From Paramicrosporidium saccamoebae KSL3 (lineage: Eukaryota; Fungi; Cryptomycota), in contig MTSL01000025.1 in assembly GCA_002794465.1 (NCBI GenBank), positions 30,811-55,301 on the forward strand: a stretch of 24,491 bases of DNA, in the 5' to 3' direction. The notes under the pieces were generated by a model. It saw only the letters and a list, made by a program, of their open reading frames with translations. It searched no databases and had not been told where the DNA came from. The position numbers and the translations under genes are program-made. Positions 3,043 through 21,684 of the stretch are shown here, piece after piece (position 1 is the stretch's first letter; every line of letters starts with the position of its first letter).

Positions 3043-4071
3043 TCACGATGAATTGCCATATGCTACTTCAAACTGCCGCAAGGACAATCTAAACATGATC
3101 CGAAACACTGTAATAGTCTCCAAGACTCTGATAGGAATCAGGTCATGGACGGGATTGAGGGATGGCATCTCTTCAATAAATTCCTCCATAACCTGAATGT
3201 CTTCTCTGCAAATGTCAAGAATTTGGAGGATGCGTGCCCATTCATCGGGTTGATCGGTGTATCCAAACTGGAACTCTCGGGCCTTCAACCCGAACCATCT
3301 GACAAGACCCCACCGTGTGAGACGTTCTTCAACCGTAAGATACCCCTCGGAGAACATTTTCACGCGCTGAAGAGCTGCACTAATCTCGTGGGAGGCTTGG
3401 TTTATAGGCATTCTCCAACGCTCCCCAGGGAGGCGCGTCCGAGGTGCATATTCCCACCCTAACAACCCGCCGTCTAGGAAATATTCACGAGGTCCTTCAT
3501 ACGCATCAAAATCTTTGTCCGTGCATACATTCCATAGAATAGAAGTCTCATCTCTGGACACTTTGATTCCCGTGGCCCGGATCATTTCCTCCGCGATCAA
3601 ACGCGAAAGCTCGTCTTTAGCAAGCGGCAGATCAGGCAACTTGCCATATCGACTGGCCATCAGCCCGCATCCATGGACATGGTACAAAACACTGAACATT
3701 CCATCGGTTTGTCTTTACCATTAGGACACGTAACATTAATGGATACCTTAAGCTTGGCTCAAAGACGCAAACGCCAAAGTGCTTAACCAGTGCTTCTATG
3801 CGCTCAGAGGGGAGATTCATTTTCCCTTGGCTGTCTCCAAAGACCATTTCCTCAAGCTGCTCGGCGACGCTCTCCTTTTCCTCAAAGTCATTAAAGTCGA
3901 AAGCCAGACTGACCTCCTTATAAAACTCGTCTCGTATCTTCAATCCAGCAGAGTTTTTGGAATCCTCTATTATGTCAGACTTCATCATCAGTACAGATTA
4001 CTAACTCCTCCTATATTCGGCAGAATGACATTAGGTACATTAATGTCACCAATTTCCGCCCTACGTTTCAT
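3043..4071 (-). CDS. Family A copy A1, unknown function. Exons 4071-4002, 3966-3747, 3712-3043 (319 aa); alternative start at ATG 3988 gives 303 aa
   Basis: Intron 2 is 3746-3713 (34 nt, GTATCC...AAG) and joins EPSLR|QTDGM in frame. Intron 1 is 4001-3967 (35 nt, GTAATC...TAG) and joins MKRRAEIG...GGV to KDSKN. Family motifs RCGKLPD, PGERW, EISA, LTVEERLTRWG and LIPIRVLE..TVFR are present. No lesions. Confidence 0.8.
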
Positions 4072-4195
4072 CTTGGTCCTATGTAGCGCCCAATTAGCTT
4101 TTATGGGCCTAAATGCCCAGTGATGGATCAATCTGTTACTTTAATGCATTTAAGGAGGCGATATACAGGACGACGAGTACTAAGATTTTAACTAG

Positions 4196-5133
4196 CTACA
4201 GGCAGTCTTCAGGGTCACGGCACGCCAGCTCAAACTGATGCAGTGACAGTCGGAACATTACCCGGAAGACTGTAACTACCTCCAAAACTTTGATGGGAAT
4301 CAAATCATGAATTGGATTTAAAAGATGCATCTTACTAGTGAATTCTTTCATCGCACTAATGTCCTCCCCACGGACGTCAAGGACAAGAAGAACGTGATTC
4401 CACTCTTCTGGCCGATTCAAGTAGCTATTCTCAAACTCTTGGATTTTAGCAGAGATTTGCATTGTGAGTCCCCATCTTGTAAGCCGTTCCTCCACTGTCA
4501 AAAAACCTTCTCTGAACATTACTACACGCTGAATGACGGCGCTAATCTCGTGTGAAGCTTGAGAATCGAGCATCCTCCAGCGTTTTCCCGGAATGGGAGT
4601 CTTTGGCACATAGTGCCATCCCATTAGGCCGTTATCCAGAAAGTAGTCGTGGGGACTTGCATAGTCTTCAAGACTTTGGTGGGCTCTTACGCTCCATGAA
4701 ATTTCCTCTTCCTCTAAAGGCACTTTGATGCCGGTAATTCGAGCCACTTCGGCTGAAACCCAATGCAAAACTTTATCCTTGGAAAGATTCGCATCGGGTA
4801 ATCTGCCGCAACGGACAGCTTTCACTCCCACCCTATGGGCGTAATAAAGGAGGCTAACTATTCCATCTCGCTCTCTTCACTATTAAGATATGACAATGTT
4901 AGATACCTTAGCGCCTGCTCAAATGTCGAATCTTTAAAGTGCTCGACAAGCTTCCTCATGCGCATCAACTTGTCGGTGCATTCGACCCTCGTTTTAAACA
5001 CTGTCTGTTCCAAGTATTCAAGTGCATCATCTTCGTCGTCGGGAGCCTTGATTTCAAATTCAAACATAAGGCAGGATTCTCTCAGGAATTCCTCCTCCAC
5101 CCTTTCGTACTCATCGCAGCTGGTGTCTATCAT
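4196..5133 (-). CDS. Family A copy A2. Exons 5133-4907 and 4874-4196 (301 aa); upstream exon degenerate
   Basis: Intron 4906-4875 (32 nt, GTATCT...AAG) joins EQALR|ERDGIVSLLYYAHRVGVKAVRCG in frame. The position homologous to the usual ATG is TTG (5157), and an in-frame ATG lies at 5133. The upstream ATGAAAC exon is shortened and has an in-frame TAA. Confidence 0.75.
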
Positions 5134-5360
5134 TGTGCTAGTATCTTCTCTTACCAAGTTGCCCGCTTTAATGTTGGGGTAAATAGTGTTTCATGTTGGG
5201 CCTATCAATGTATCCGTGTCCTTGCAGCGATAAATTGATTTAAGAGTCTCAAGTGTATACTATTTTATCACACGTGTGGAAAAAGACTCGTTTATTGTTT
5301 CACTGTCCTCAAATACCCGGATAATCAATCTACTATATCACGACGTAATAACCCCCATTG

Positions 5361-18953: not shown

Positions 18954-19914
18954 ATGATAAAAGACCTTGCCGCTGCAATAGCTTCTGAAACCTCTGCTAA
19001 AGACAGAGTGGAGGGAGAATTCGAGAGAGAGACGTGCCTTGCATTTGAGTTTGACAGCTTTGAAGAGGAAGATGGCGCTCTAAGGGGGCTACAGAGCATG
19101 CTGCTTAACACCCAAGATGAAAGCATCGATGATCCGGTAGAGTGCATGGAAAAGCTCGTGGAACTGTTCAAGGATCACACCTTTGAGCCGGAGCTGAGGT
19201 ATCCTAATTGAGTGGTTTTCATGAGTTAGGGTGGAAAACGGAATGTTTACTATCGTATTCTTTATCCCAGGCCGTGGGTTTGGGGGCTTTCGATGTGGAA
19301 AGCTGCCAGACCATTCATTTAGCAAAGAAGAGATTCCGGACATATTCTCTAAAGAATTTTCCCGTATAACAGGCATTGAGGTCTCTCAGGAGGAAACGCG
19401 CATTTCATGGAACGTTCGTTCCGACAAAGAGTATGATGAATATGTCAGTCCAAGGGAATACTTTCTTGATGACGGTGTAATGGCATGGCACTATGCCCCC
19501 AAGATGCATAGATCTGGAGAGCGTTGGAGATATAATCCAACTCAACCAACCATTGAGATTAGCGCTGTCTTTTTGCATATAAAGGAACTCTCAGGCTACC
19601 TCACCGTGGAAGACAGACTGACACGATGGGGTATTATAACGCACGTTGCGTCGCGAGCTCTAGCATTCCAGCAGGAATATGCAGACCGTCCTGAGGGCTG
19701 GAGGCGCATTCTCCTCATCCTTGACATCCGTGAGGAAGACATTCGGCTGATGGAAGAGTTTACCAATAAAATGCGCCTTTTGGATCCCATCCGCGACCTC
19801 ATCCCGATCCGGGTCCTGGAAGTAATCACTGTCTTCCGGGTGCTGTTTCGACTTTCTTTGGGAGAGTTTGAACTGGCTGACAATGCTCCCCATAAGATAA
19901 CTCTGGCCAATTAA
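18954..19914 (+). CDS. Family A copy A10. Exons 18954-19198 and 19230-19914 (309 aa)
   Basis: Intron 19199-19229 (31 nt, GTATCC...TTAG) joins EPELR|VENGM. The upstream exon starts with TTG and its donor reads AT at 18944. Confidence 0.8.
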
Positions 19915-20723
19915 ACTCACCAAAAATACATTAACGTTATTAAAAGTATTCACTACCATAACCAGGTTATTAAAGTATATAGACTACAAGCCACACGGAT
20001 CCTGAATGTGGCGGTCTTTCGACCCACAATGTTTCTAAATAAGGTAATATATTAAAATTATAAAGGTAGATCCAAAAACTGTGCGGATGGGCGGCCACCA
20101 AGGTTCATAGTTCGATTTTGTCAATTAATGGAAATATATGTCTGCTAAGCAGTATCCGCCTGTCGTGTAGTAGGGAAAACACCGCGGGCCAAGCCAGACG
20201 AGAAGAGACGAAAAGAAATCGTGTCCATTGTTAATCCAACGGCCTAATTCAGGCGAGAAGAGAGCTTGGTCACTGCTGATCCCAAAATCGTAAGAATACA
20301 GACCCCACTGTTCTCAAATACTCAGCCAATCGCTCCACTCTATTACACAGACATGTCTTCCCCAAGCTGGGGAACTATCTCCAAATAACATCGCAATCAA
20401 TCCTCTACTTCACACGTCTATGACTGGCAAGTCTGACCCAGATAGCGACCCTACAGTCCATTCCTGCCACGTTGAGGATGGTGGCCTATAAAGGAGCCAC
20501 ATTCTTTAATAAACTTGGAATTGACTCATCAACAACGCTTTCAAATGCGCTGATTTGGCTTTGACAGTTTCTATTGACCAAAAAATTAACTTTTGGATAT
20601 CTATAATTAGAGCCAATTGGTTGTTGGAAAGGTACAGGCACGTCGATAGGGTGAACATGAAACGCGCCGCATAACTCGAAGAGAATGACACGCAAAACAC
20701 GATTCAGCCGAATATTCGGAAAA

Positions 20724-21684
20724 ATGGTAACTAAAGAACCGATAGAGTTTAATGCAACAGAGTGTTCAGCAGATTCTGACAGAATGAAAGTGATGGACGC
20801 ATTCGAGCATGAAGCTAGTCTTGCTTTCGAGTTTAGCGACTCTGACGAAGAGGAAAATGTCCTCGGAGAGCTCGAAGAGATAATCTTTGGAGTTAGTAAA
20901 GGAAATGCCGACCTTTCTTTTGAGCGTGTGGATGCACTCGTTGAGCACTTTCAAGACTGCACATTCGAACCAGCCTTGAGGTATCCAACTTGAAACATCT
21001 TATCAGTGTAGGGTAAAAGACGGAATGTTTAGCATTCTTTACGCCGTCCCAGACCGTGGATTTGAAGCGGCTAGATGTGGGAAATTGCCGGACGAACCAT
21101 TCACCAAGAACGACATTCCCCACTTGTTCGCAAAGGAAGTCGCTCGCGCCACCGGAATCGAAATTTCCAAAGATGAAACGGCGATCCTATGGAACGTGCG
21201 CACCGACCAAACAATCGAGGACTACGAGGGATGTAGAGAATACTTTCTGGACGGTGGCGTCTTGGGATGGGAATATGCGCCCCAGAAACGCATTCCAGGG
21301 GAGCGCTGGAAATGTCCGACGGATCATGGGTCCCATGAGATTGGTGCTGTCTTTCGGCGCATCAAGATATTTTCAGAGGGTTATCTAACGGTTGAAGAGC
21401 GACTTGCACGCTGGGGACTTGTAAAATGGTTTGGGATAAAGATCCAAGCGTTCCAAAATGGATATGTAGACCGCCCCGAGGAATGGAGTCGTGTTCTCCT
21501 CGTCCTTGATGTTTGTGAGGAGGATATCCAGACCATGCACACGTTTACGAGTGAGATGCATCTTTTGAACCCCATCTGGAACTTTATTCCGATTCGTGTT
21601 CTCGAGACAATCACAGTGTTTCGGGTATTGTTCCGACTGTCGTTAAGAGACTTTGAGCTGGCATATAGCGCACTTGACAACTGA
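20724..21684 (+). CDS. Family A copy A11. Exons 20724-20980 and 21012-21684 (309 aa); start ambiguous (20685 also in frame)
   Basis: Intron 20981-21011 (31 nt, GTATCC...TGTAG) joins EPALR|VKDGM. The upstream exon 20657-20726 and intron 20727-20760 are recognisable, but the exon carries TAA at codon 6 (20672-20674). Confidence 0.75.

Follow-up and report, generated by a model that had tools for sequence, protein, structure and literature searches.

The final 24.5 kb of the 55.3-kb contig MTSL01000025.1 (assembly GCA_002794465.1) of Paramicrosporidium saccamoebae, an intranuclear rozellomycotan parasite of amoebae (accession MTSL00000000; PMC5701793), contain a repeated gene, designated here A1 to A11, which is present in ten full copies and one fragment and whose 5' region is the subject of this work. 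This stretch of 24,491 nucleotides (nt) is called the window, all positions are given within it, and its end is the end of the contig; the A array located there may be part of a subtelomere, or else the assembly may be broken at this point. None of the ten A copies is called as a gene in GenBank, and the terminal 8.6 kb (15844-24491) contain no annotated genes. In the genome paper, for which RNA-seq data also exist (Quandt et al. 2017, PMC5701793), repeats found by RepeatScout were masked and Augustus was trained on Rhizopus (PMC5701793), and it is likely that the A genes were missed because of this masking and because Rhizopus-trained models fail on introns of 31-38 nt. The 30-34-nt second intron of these genes is probably the reason why standard gene finders overlook them. 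Since a selectively maintained family of ten copies is wholly absent from the published annotation, Rozellomycota gene counts, and the inferences of 'gene loss' drawn in this group, may be biased.

A search of 5.8 billion protein clusters returned 13 homologues, all of them exon-3 open reading frames (ORFs) from the JGI metagenomes 3300042203-5, with 48-59% identity, and the contigs behind these homologues carry ten further distinct gene copies, which are given L numbers here. In the protein tree, several subfamilies are common to P. saccamoebae and the metagenome organism(s), namely A2/L009a; A9/L002a, L005a, L010 and L011; and A5, A6, A7 and A10/L008. The synonymous divergence (dS) between most paralogues is saturated, ranging from 1.1 to more than 4, and features that are still conserved are therefore under selection. 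As judged by sequence comparison, the A genes form a family of three-exon genes that is lineage-specific, has been amplified in tandem, and occurs in P. saccamoebae and in close relatives known solely from metagenomes.

The elements of an A gene follow each other in a fixed order, in which the motif xTGAAAC and exon 1 (67, 70 or 73 nt; 22-24 codons) are succeeded by intron 1 (35-47 nt), exon 2, intron 2 (30-34 nt) and exon 3. In the alignment of the ten copies, intron 2 separates an acidic exon of ~80 codons from another of ~220 codons. It is 31 nt long in 16 of the 20 copies (A copies and L002-L011 loci), and its grammar consists of GTAYYN, of TT[AC]AY located 8-9 nt before the 3' end, and of TAG. 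When intron 2 is removed, the ORF that begins at the second ATG (ATG2) encodes ~303 amino acids (aa), and it is intact in A1, A2, A5, A6, A7, A9, A10 and A11. The two other copies are pseudogenes in the gene body, owing to a stop and a frameshift in A4 and to a stop in A8.

Exon 1 is intact in A1, A4, A8 and A9. In A1, located on the minus strand, exon 1 (4002-4071; 70 nt, MKRRAEIGDINVPNVILPNIGGV) is followed by an intron 1 of 35 nt (3967-4001; GTAATC...CTGAC...ATAG), which contains in-frame ATGs at 3988 and 3985, the exon-1-frame TGA overlapping the ATG at 3988. The A1 body (3043-3966) comprises exon 2 (3966-3747), an intron 2 of 34 nt with an AAG acceptor (3746-3713) and exon 3 (3712-3043); it is intact, with a long form of 319 aa and a short form of 303 aa. 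In A9, on the plus strand, exon 1 (17228-17297; 70 nt, MKPTTELDGSNVTNSIQTNTRKA) and a 38-nt intron 1 (17298-17335; GTAGCG...GTTAC...ATAG), with ATG2 at 17308 in an ATGA overlap, precede an intact body (17336-18250; intron 2 at 17550-17580 between exons 2 and 3), the long form being of 317 aa and the short form of 303 aa. A4, also on the plus strand, has an exon 1 of 67 nt (9547-9613; MKHTTRFNAAVITNSTQPNVKA), an intron 1 of 38 nt (9614-9651; GTGACG...GTAAC...ATAG) with ATG2 at 9624 in an ATGA stop/start overlap, and a body (9652-10562; intron 2 at 9866-9896 between exons 2 and 3) interrupted by a TAA ending at 10062 and by a 1-nt frameshift. In A8, on the minus strand, exon 1 (16966-17035; 70 nt, MKPAADFDEAIIQNTIKSNTTEI) is followed by an intron 1 of 47 nt (16919-16965), which carries a 9-nt in-frame insertion behind ATG2 (16955, ATGA overlap), and by a body (15992-16918; intron 2 at 16695-16665 between exons 2 and 3) with an in-frame TGA ending at 16436. 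Thus, two of the four copies with an intact long-form exon 1, A4 and A8, are pseudogenes in the body; exon 1 is also intact in the metagenome copy L009b, the third body-dead gene, and all three are probably recent pseudogenes.

The remaining six copies have lost the long form through different lesions, as the sequence-only reading, an earlier description of this DNA based on its letters, had proposed, except that the lesion is common to A5 and A6. In A2 (minus strand), a 35-nt deletion plus an insertion with respect to its orthologue L009a have left an exon-1 remnant of 40 nt (5155-5194) with a stop at codon 9, followed by an intron-1 equivalent of 28 nt (5127-5154; GTAAGA...ATAG), with an in-frame ATG at 5133, 7 nt before the acceptor, and by an intact body (4196-5126; intron 2 at 4906-4875, of 32 nt, between exons 2 and 3) which gives 301 aa from that ATG. 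The other five copies lie on the plus strand. The A5 remnant (11046-11105; 60 nt) has a GTG start, the 7-nt deletion common with A6 and a stop at codon 13; its intron-1 equivalent (11106-11143; 38 nt, GTAGTA...TTGAC...GTAG) contains ATG2 at 11116, and its body is intact (11144-12057; exon 2, intron 2 at 11361-11390, of 30 nt, exon 3; short form of 303 aa). In A6, the remnant (12542-12599), with the same deletion and a stop at codon 13, is followed by an intron-1 equivalent (12600-12637) in which the GT donor has been deleted while the TTGAC branch site, the ATAG acceptor and ATG2 (12610) are present, and by an intact body (12638-13552; exon 2, intron 2 at 12855-12885, exon 3; short form of 303 aa). 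In A7, the frame of the remnant (13995-14039; 45 nt) has been broken by a deletion of ~22-25 nt, all the signals of the intron-1 equivalent (14040-14077; 38 nt, GTAGCA...CTGAT...ATAG; ATG2 at 14050) are intact, and so is the body (14078-14992; exon 2, intron 2 at 14295-14325, exon 3; short form of 303 aa). The A10 remnant (18877-18943; 67 nt) has an open frame and TTG in place of the start codon; in its intron-1 equivalent (18944-18981) the donor has changed from GT to AT and the branch-site A to C (TTGCC), ATAG is present and ATG2 lies at 18954, ahead of an intact body (18982-19914; exon 2, intron 2 at 19199-19229, exon 3; short form of 309 aa). Exon 1 of A11 (20657-20726; 70 nt) has been broken by a single TAA at codon 6, the remainder being in frame (..NTIQPNIRKN); from in-frame ATGs at 20685 and 20724, which read through unspliced, the intron-1 equivalent (20727-20760; 34 nt, GTAACT...TTAAT...ACAG) and the intact body (20761-21684; exon 2, intron 2 at 20981-21011, exon 3) give 322 and 309 aa, respectively.

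The conserved ATGAAAC described by the sequence-only reading upstream of the apparent start codons is found at a homologous site in A1 (4071, minus strand), A2 (5194, minus strand), A4 (9547), A6 (12542), A7 (13995), A8 (17035, minus strand), A9 (17228) and A11 (20657), and this site reads GTGAAAC in A5 and TTGAAAC in A10. The motif occurs 12 times in the window, against ~3 occurrences expected by composition, and 8 of the 12 are located at the homologous site upstream of family copies. The GT situated 70 nt downstream in A1, A8, A9 and A11, and 67 nt downstream in A4, was reproduced, as were all other positions and lengths given in that reading. Joining this donor to the aligned YAG leaves an open main frame and removes introns of 35, 47, 38, 34 and 38 nt, respectively, the junctions 4002/3966 (A1) and 17297/17336 (A9) being exact. 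The assertion that the unspliced frame relationship differs between copies did not hold: the offset is identical (+2) in A1, A4, A8, A9 and A10, and frame restoration is therefore one inherited feature rather than five coincidences. Promoter-like elements, common across species, are located upstream of every A copy (e.g., 17100-17227), with ATTGG, an inverted CCAAT box, at ~-45 and ~-95 from ATGAAAC and a TTTAGACTCTTGAG element at ~-65; both types of element are retained even where exon 1 has been lost.

The metagenome copies have the same arrangement. An intact long-form exon 1 of 67, 70 or 73 nt from ATGAAAC is present in eight of the ten, the exceptions being L003b, with ATGAAGC and a nonsense codon, and L011, in which ATG has become ATA. 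A GTA donor, reading GTAGCACA in eight copies, and a TTGAC branch site are found in all ten, and the acceptor, (A/G)TAG or CAG, follows the donor at a distance of 36-38 nt. The spacing between donor and ATG2 is 10 nt in eight copies and 9 nt in L003b, while the ATG2 of L009a precedes the acceptor by 7 nt.

Different lines of evidence indicate that exon 1 is under coding constraint. In the frame set by ATGAAAC, the entropies of codon positions 1, 2 and 3 are 0.82, 0.76 and 1.36, and the ratio of nonsynonymous to synonymous differences (pN/pS) is 0.49, versus 0.96 and 0.85 in the other two frames, which hold 6 and 23 stops. The peptide encoded, MKRxAE[FLI]xExxVxNxIQPNTxxA, contains a QPN motif that is spelled synonymously in the different copies (CAA/CAG, CCC/CCT/CCG, AAC/AAT), and the length of the exon (67, 70 or 73 nt) is always 1 mod 3, with changes of +3 and +6 only. 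It is thus well supported that exon 1 is translated and constitutes a previously unseen coding first exon. Another candidate structure, an intron of the 5' untranslated region (UTR) ending in ..GCAG before GTAGC, was ruled out by an exon 1 without any GT in A8 and by the coding periodicity of exon 1.

As regards intron 1, the GT donor is present in 18 of the 20 copies and the YAG acceptor in all 20, and three signals, namely GT, TAG and, ~12 nt from the 3' end, the branch site TTGAY, are conserved even at wobble positions while the surrounding amino acids differ. As had been claimed, the acceptor A always falls on the third position of a codon (ATA, GTA or ACA) in the window copies. When the tail behind GT is read as the end of an upstream ORF (uORF), no conserved peptide is obtained (GSTQ*, GST*, SNLY*, SDAP*, GNTKY*). 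In the frame of ATG2, codons 2-9 show an inverted periodicity, with a mean wobble entropy of 0.57, and the invariant bases are the T and the A at the wobble positions of codons 5 and 9, respectively, and the G that opens codon 10, at codons whose residues vary (L/F/S/V/C/A at 5, I/V at 9, A/V/D/G at 10); these bases spell T-GAY, the branch site, and TAG. In codons 10-22 the mean wobble entropy rises to 1.58 (Mann-Whitney p = 4e-4), and from codon 10 there is no invariant column for 36 nt, so that the change of evolutionary regime coincides exactly with the predicted 3' splice site, TAG|.

The size of intron 1, 35-47 nt, is in line with that of intron 2 in all 20 copies, and an intron of such size and grammar is normal in A genes, since the undisputed intron 2 has 30-34 nt and the signals GTAY.., TT[AC]AY and TAG. 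A similar branch spacing appears elsewhere in the organism, in the putative 54-nt intron (7801-7854) of an annotated gene of the window, where CTAAT lies 12 nt before TAG. The removal of intron 1 joins two frames that are each under coding constraint, with periodicity resuming directly after TAG. These data give good support to intron 1 being a genuine phase-1 miniature intron with a GTA donor, TTGAY and TAG, which would be removed by splicing.

An in-frame ATG, open to the acceptor, exists in or next to intron 1 in all 20 copies, despite a dS between paralogues above 1. It lies strictly inside the intron in 19 of them, usually 10 nt after the donor, and abuts the donor in A11. Among the ten window copies, in all of which the claimed ATG was found, those of A2 and A11 are the displaced ones. 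The ancestral ATG is lost in the A2/L009a subfamily (ATA, then a stop), where a new one has arisen 7 nt before the acceptor, and L003b carries both positions. Indels between ATG2 and the acceptor are multiples of three (-6 in A1, +9 in A8), whereas intron 2 varies by +/-1 nt, and intron 1 is on the whole better conserved than intron 2 (mean entropy 0.61 versus 0.79-0.92). The intronic ATG thus looks functional and, as far as can be told from these comparisons, is under selection. In addition, the unspliced exon 1 forms, as described previously, an ORF of 26-27 codons, whose stop overlaps the second ATG as TGATG in A1 and as ATGA in A4, A8, A9 and A10; considering the 14 copies with an open exon-1 ORF (A10 read from TTG and L011 from ATA), this overlap (ATGA, TAATG or TGATG) is found in 13, L009a being the exception. 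In metagenome protein P0021 (315 aa), intron 2 is in frame and open, and the prokaryote-style call runs from ATG2 to the stop.

Lesions disable exon 1 in A2, in the pair A5/A6 (common 7-nt deletion), in A7, A10 and A11, and in the metagenome copies L003b and L011, which on the protein tree represents at least 5-6 independent losses. All eight genes without a working exon 1 conserve intact bodies of ~300 codons, with dN/dS values (ratio of nonsynonymous to synonymous divergence) of 0.06-0.30, indicative of strong purifying selection. A5 and A6 differ by a dS of 1.6 with an omega of 0.165, and their exon-1 lesion predates their split. A10 no longer has an exon-1 start codon (TTG), a GT donor (AT) or a branch A (TTGCC), yet it retains ATG2 and its ORF. 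These observations support the notion that several paralogues have become short-only. A methionine is also conserved at the start of exon 3 (..KDGM..; e.g., 17591-17593) in most members of the family, and prokaryotic gene callers start there.

Taken as a whole, the data are best read as a system of two N-terminal isoforms, generated by splicing or by retention of a miniature 5' intron, in which some paralogues have turned short-only, and we consider this reading rather probable. Each complete gene would probably make a long and a short protein. Transcription would start just upstream of ATGAAAC, below the ATTGG boxes. The spliced mRNA would be translated into the long form, in which the exon-1 peptide is fused to exon 2, and the unspliced mRNA into the short form, which would lack this peptide and begin with 2-12 intron-encoded residues. 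In the latter, the exon-1-frame stop overlapping the intronic AUG would favour termination-reinitiation at this point, and the ratio of isoforms would be set by the splicing efficiency of the miniature intron. The uORF-coupled reinitiation that the sequence-only reading had offered as an alternative is compatible with the data, and in the model preferred here it becomes the route by which unspliced mRNA would reach the second ATG. In microsporidia, short 5'-biased introns are spliced at <20% (PMC6349667), and a large unspliced fraction is therefore plausible in the sister lineage represented by P. saccamoebae. What the comparisons show is constraint on exon 1 and on the splice signals, retention of the intronic AUG and purifying selection on exon-1-less genes; the actual splicing, the production of both isoforms by one gene, the reinitiation and any functional difference between the isoforms are inferred.

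The closest mechanistic precedent for such a design would not be wtf but the yeast gene GCR1, in which a start codon inside the retained intron gives rise to Gcr1U and splicing to Gcr1S (PMC7826247). Both systems would share an exon-1 start used after splicing, a second start located in the retained intron on the unspliced mRNA, and two functional proteins that differ only at their N-termini (PMC7826247). They differ in that the GCR1 intron has 739 nt and the unspliced form is the longer one, while in the A genes the intron has 35-47 nt and the unspliced form is the shorter. Moreover, in the A genes the stop of the exon-1 frame overlaps the intronic AUG, and the arrangement, known here from sequence alone, is family-wide and has been repeatedly resolved into short-only paralogues. 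Another likeness is found in PTC7 of S. cerevisiae, for which, as cited in PMC7826247, splicing or retention of a 5' intron leads to two proteins differing near the N-terminus; there the intron is read in frame from the same start, whereas in the A genes the retained intron would supply a new one. The miniature introns of microsporidia (e.g., 23-30 nt in Encephalitozoon cuniculi) resemble intron 1 in being very short, near the start codon, in a compact genome and in the same broad clade, and differ in that they are mostly found in ribosomal-protein genes. To our knowledge, no conserved alternative start codon exists in them. Their splicing efficiency is low and much of the mRNA is unspliced (PMC6349667). 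What appears to be new is an unannotated gene family with a variant of a known retained-intron start mechanism. If this is true, 38 nucleotides carry at once a donor, a start codon, the stop of an upstream frame, a branch site and an acceptor, a compact natural case in which the efficiency of splicing would control the isoforms, on the branch that leads to microsporidia, a group whose short introns are considered almost vestigial.

Several observations weigh against this interpretation. A collection of 15 billion proteins contains no exact match to any of seven protein models, long or short, or to an exon-3 ORF; a profile search with exon 1 plus exon 2 retrieved only exon-2 ORFs, and neither it nor the searches of protein clusters and with a hidden Markov model found a spliced or intron-less homologue; and all 118 matches to a degenerate pattern of the junction left by splicing of intron 2 were chance ones, from outside the family. 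The donor of intron 1, GTAGCA, differs from that of intron 2, GTATCN. In A5, A7, A2, A11 and L003b the long form has been lost, and GT, the branch site and TAG are retained; if splicing removed their sole start codon, these signals should decay. This points to losses that are recent, to signals that still serve some purpose, or to a second role of the bases. In A6 and A10, ATAG is still present without a donor. The copies are related by descent, and the entropy statistics do not therefore constitute independent samples. Finally, the frame offset together with an A at +4 could be enough to explain why stop and start overlap.

Part of this evidence is accommodated by a conserved-peptide uORF without splicing, in which exon 1 would be a regulatory ORF of 25-27 codons whose stop overlaps the true start, ATG2, so that only the short form would be made and copies lacking the uORF would be deregulated. 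The exon-1 ORF is indeed under peptide-level selection, its stop overlaps ATG2 in nearly all the copies in which it is open, exon-1-less copies have intact, selected bodies, A5 and A7, for which the long form is impossible, retain the bases GTAGCACA..T-GAY..TAG, and the searches gave no support for splicing in the form of complementary DNA. The likeness to known conserved-peptide uORFs extends to a conserved upstream ORF of this size ending over the next AUG, and amino-acid conservation with an end before or at the main AUG is found here, on the unspliced transcript only. However, the conserved part lies in the middle of the peptide rather than at its C-terminus, and splice signals argue that the ORF is an exon too. 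GT is conserved though it occupies positions 2-3 of a Gly/Ser codon, with a tail behind it that is not conserved as a peptide; the inverted periodicity of codons 2-9, whose fixed bases are a branch site and TAG at the spacing of intron 2, gives way to normal periodicity right after TAG; and in L009a the uORF ends 20 nt before the ATG of that gene. This explanation is unlikely, and it keeps some weight because the splice signals persist in copies with a dead long form.

It is more doubtful that the long form is the only product, with intron 1 constitutively spliced, the intronic ATG incidental, and the exon-1-less copies dying or starting at a downstream methionine. Exon 1 and its splice signals are conserved across species, as would be expected, the methionine at the start of exon 3 would be available, and three of the exon-1 lesions (A11, L003b and L011) are single, recent-looking point changes. 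Against this stand the eight exon-1-less genes, with ~300-codon bodies and dN/dS of 0.06-0.30, including A5 and A6 with an old common lesion (dS 1.6), the retention of the ATG in 20 of 20 copies at saturated dS, even by relocation in one subfamily, the indels in multiples of three behind ATG2, and the fact that A10, without donor and branch A, and A6, without donor, have both retained ATG2.

The sequence-only reading had compared the A genes with the wtf poison/antidote genes. Its proposal of long and short isoforms gains from the comparative evidence for a coding exon 1, a mini-intron, an intronic start and short-only paralogues, whereas the wtf analogy fails on homology, membrane topology, promoter room in intron 1 and direction of decay. 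The resemblance consists of nested long and short proteins that would differ by an N-terminus encoded in exon 1, with the short start in or behind intron 1, and of a multicopy, mosaic and pseudogene-rich family. Of the two promoters used by wtf genes, the one for the poison, with a Mei4 FLEX motif, is located within intron 1, ~110 bp ahead of the start of the poison (PMC9762604), and six transmembrane helices are predicted for Wtf4 (PMC5478261). By contrast, intron 1 of the A genes cannot house a promoter, since it has 35-47 nt with an ATG 10 nt after the donor, and the proteins are acidic and soluble. The wtf genes adjoin Tf long terminal repeats, and their usual decay product is an antidote-only, that is, long-only gene. 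In the A family, as the sequence-only reading had remarked, decay goes the opposite way, all eight partly decayed genes with intact bodies being short-only.

A system with opposed activities, in which an active short isoform is neutralised or redirected by the exon-1 peptide of the long one, within a selfish or conflict-driven array analogous in function to the wtf genes, unrelated to them and switched by splicing of the mini-intron instead of by two promoters, is very improbable. A wtf-like selfish system proper, with a toxic short isoform neutralised through the exon-1 peptide in a family that expands and decays as drivers do, is slightly less probable still. Two nested N-terminal isoforms are plausible, the array is tandem, mosaic, rich in pseudogenes and located at a contig end, and the orphan family is limited to one lineage, which would suit a driver. 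Nevertheless, neither sequence homology nor a similar fold links the proteins to Wtf or to any toxin, in agreement with the earlier claim of no sequence homology to Wtf (no Pfam, PDB sequence or PDB fold match), there are no transmembrane helices, the intron is too small for a separate promoter, decay towards short-only ('poison-only') genes would be suicidal, and the subfamilies are old, common to species and under strong purifying selection instead of diversifying rapidly. The finding carries no information on wtf-like drive.

The least probable explanation of all, a chance coincidence of ATG, GT and YAG in an ordinary 5' UTR, would draw on the 5-10% of shuffled 5' regions which yield some in-frame model of this kind and on the non-independence of the window copies, and is opposed by the conservation of the arrangement in ten more copies, which belong to other genomes and whose synonymous divergence is saturated, by the codon periodicity of exon 1 and by splice signals fixed at wobble positions. 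Given those shuffled regions, the pattern in a single copy is weak evidence, and within the window alone the case for a hidden exon is suggestive rather than strong; its weight comes from conservation across paralogues at saturated dS and across species.

The A proteins are predicted to be soluble and acidic, with a net charge of -6 to -18 in the N-terminal 100 residues, and sequence analysis found neither a signal peptide nor a transmembrane helix in them; the most hydrophobic 19-mer has a Kyte-Doolittle value of 1.3-1.7, includes 3-4 charged residues and corresponds to a buried helix in the AlphaFold2 (AF2) model. Searches of Pfam and of PDB sequences with exons 2 and 3 gave no match. A hidden Markov model search of 1.84 billion representatives returned 12 matches, of which 11 are fragments of the same family and one, P0031, is an apparently unrelated protein of 1302 aa with a weak 17-stretch match. 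The exon-3 domain is modelled by AF2 as a small beta-sheet subdomain plus a helical bundle (predicted local distance difference test, pLDDT, 82; predicted template modelling score, pTM, 0.78), and a Foldseek comparison of this model with the PDB gave no match better than E = 0.3, with only a faint ubiquitin-like/beta-grasp likeness. The domain would therefore be a confidently predicted fold without a known relative, and the family appears to be an orphan of the Paramicrosporidium clade.

On two of the metagenome contigs, L002 and L005 (JGI 3300042204 and 3300042203, respectively), the A-family gene adjoins a choline-kinase gene. As these contigs also carry genes for Mog1 and ribosomal protein S8, they belong to a eukaryote related to Paramicrosporidium. 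A pattern search for related loci in a metagenome contig collection gave 82 pattern matches, none of them confirmed, and the samples of the relatives gave no contig in either scan.

Outside the A genes, the window contains Mre11 (1091-2833) and a glutathione reductase (5398-6771, minus strand), both identified by exact matches to NCBI proteins on MTSL01000025.1, and scans for transfer RNA genes and with Rfam found no match in it. A segmental duplication (8490-9044 versus 15367-15921, 88-94% identity) carries annotated ORFs of 109 aa (8638-8967 and 15514-15843, both on the minus strand) for which Pfam gave no match, and each of its copies lies beside the 3' end of an A gene, namely the A3 fragment (~9176-9281, minus strand) and A8. 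The annotated gene of 295 aa at 7348-8289 (plus strand) contains a direct repeat (7447-7673 versus 7963-8189, 72%), and a 54-nt intron has to be assumed to account for its length, most likely the one at 7801-7854 (GTCCCT...CTAAT N12 TAG), whose removal eliminates the sole in-frame stop. Finally, an unannotated ORF of 289 aa (22599-23468, plus strand) resembles a multi-pass membrane protein in its several stretches of strong hydrophobicity, and a second copy starts at the window end (24353-24491, plus strand), 78% identical over the first 139 nt, which looks like another tandem family beside the A array.

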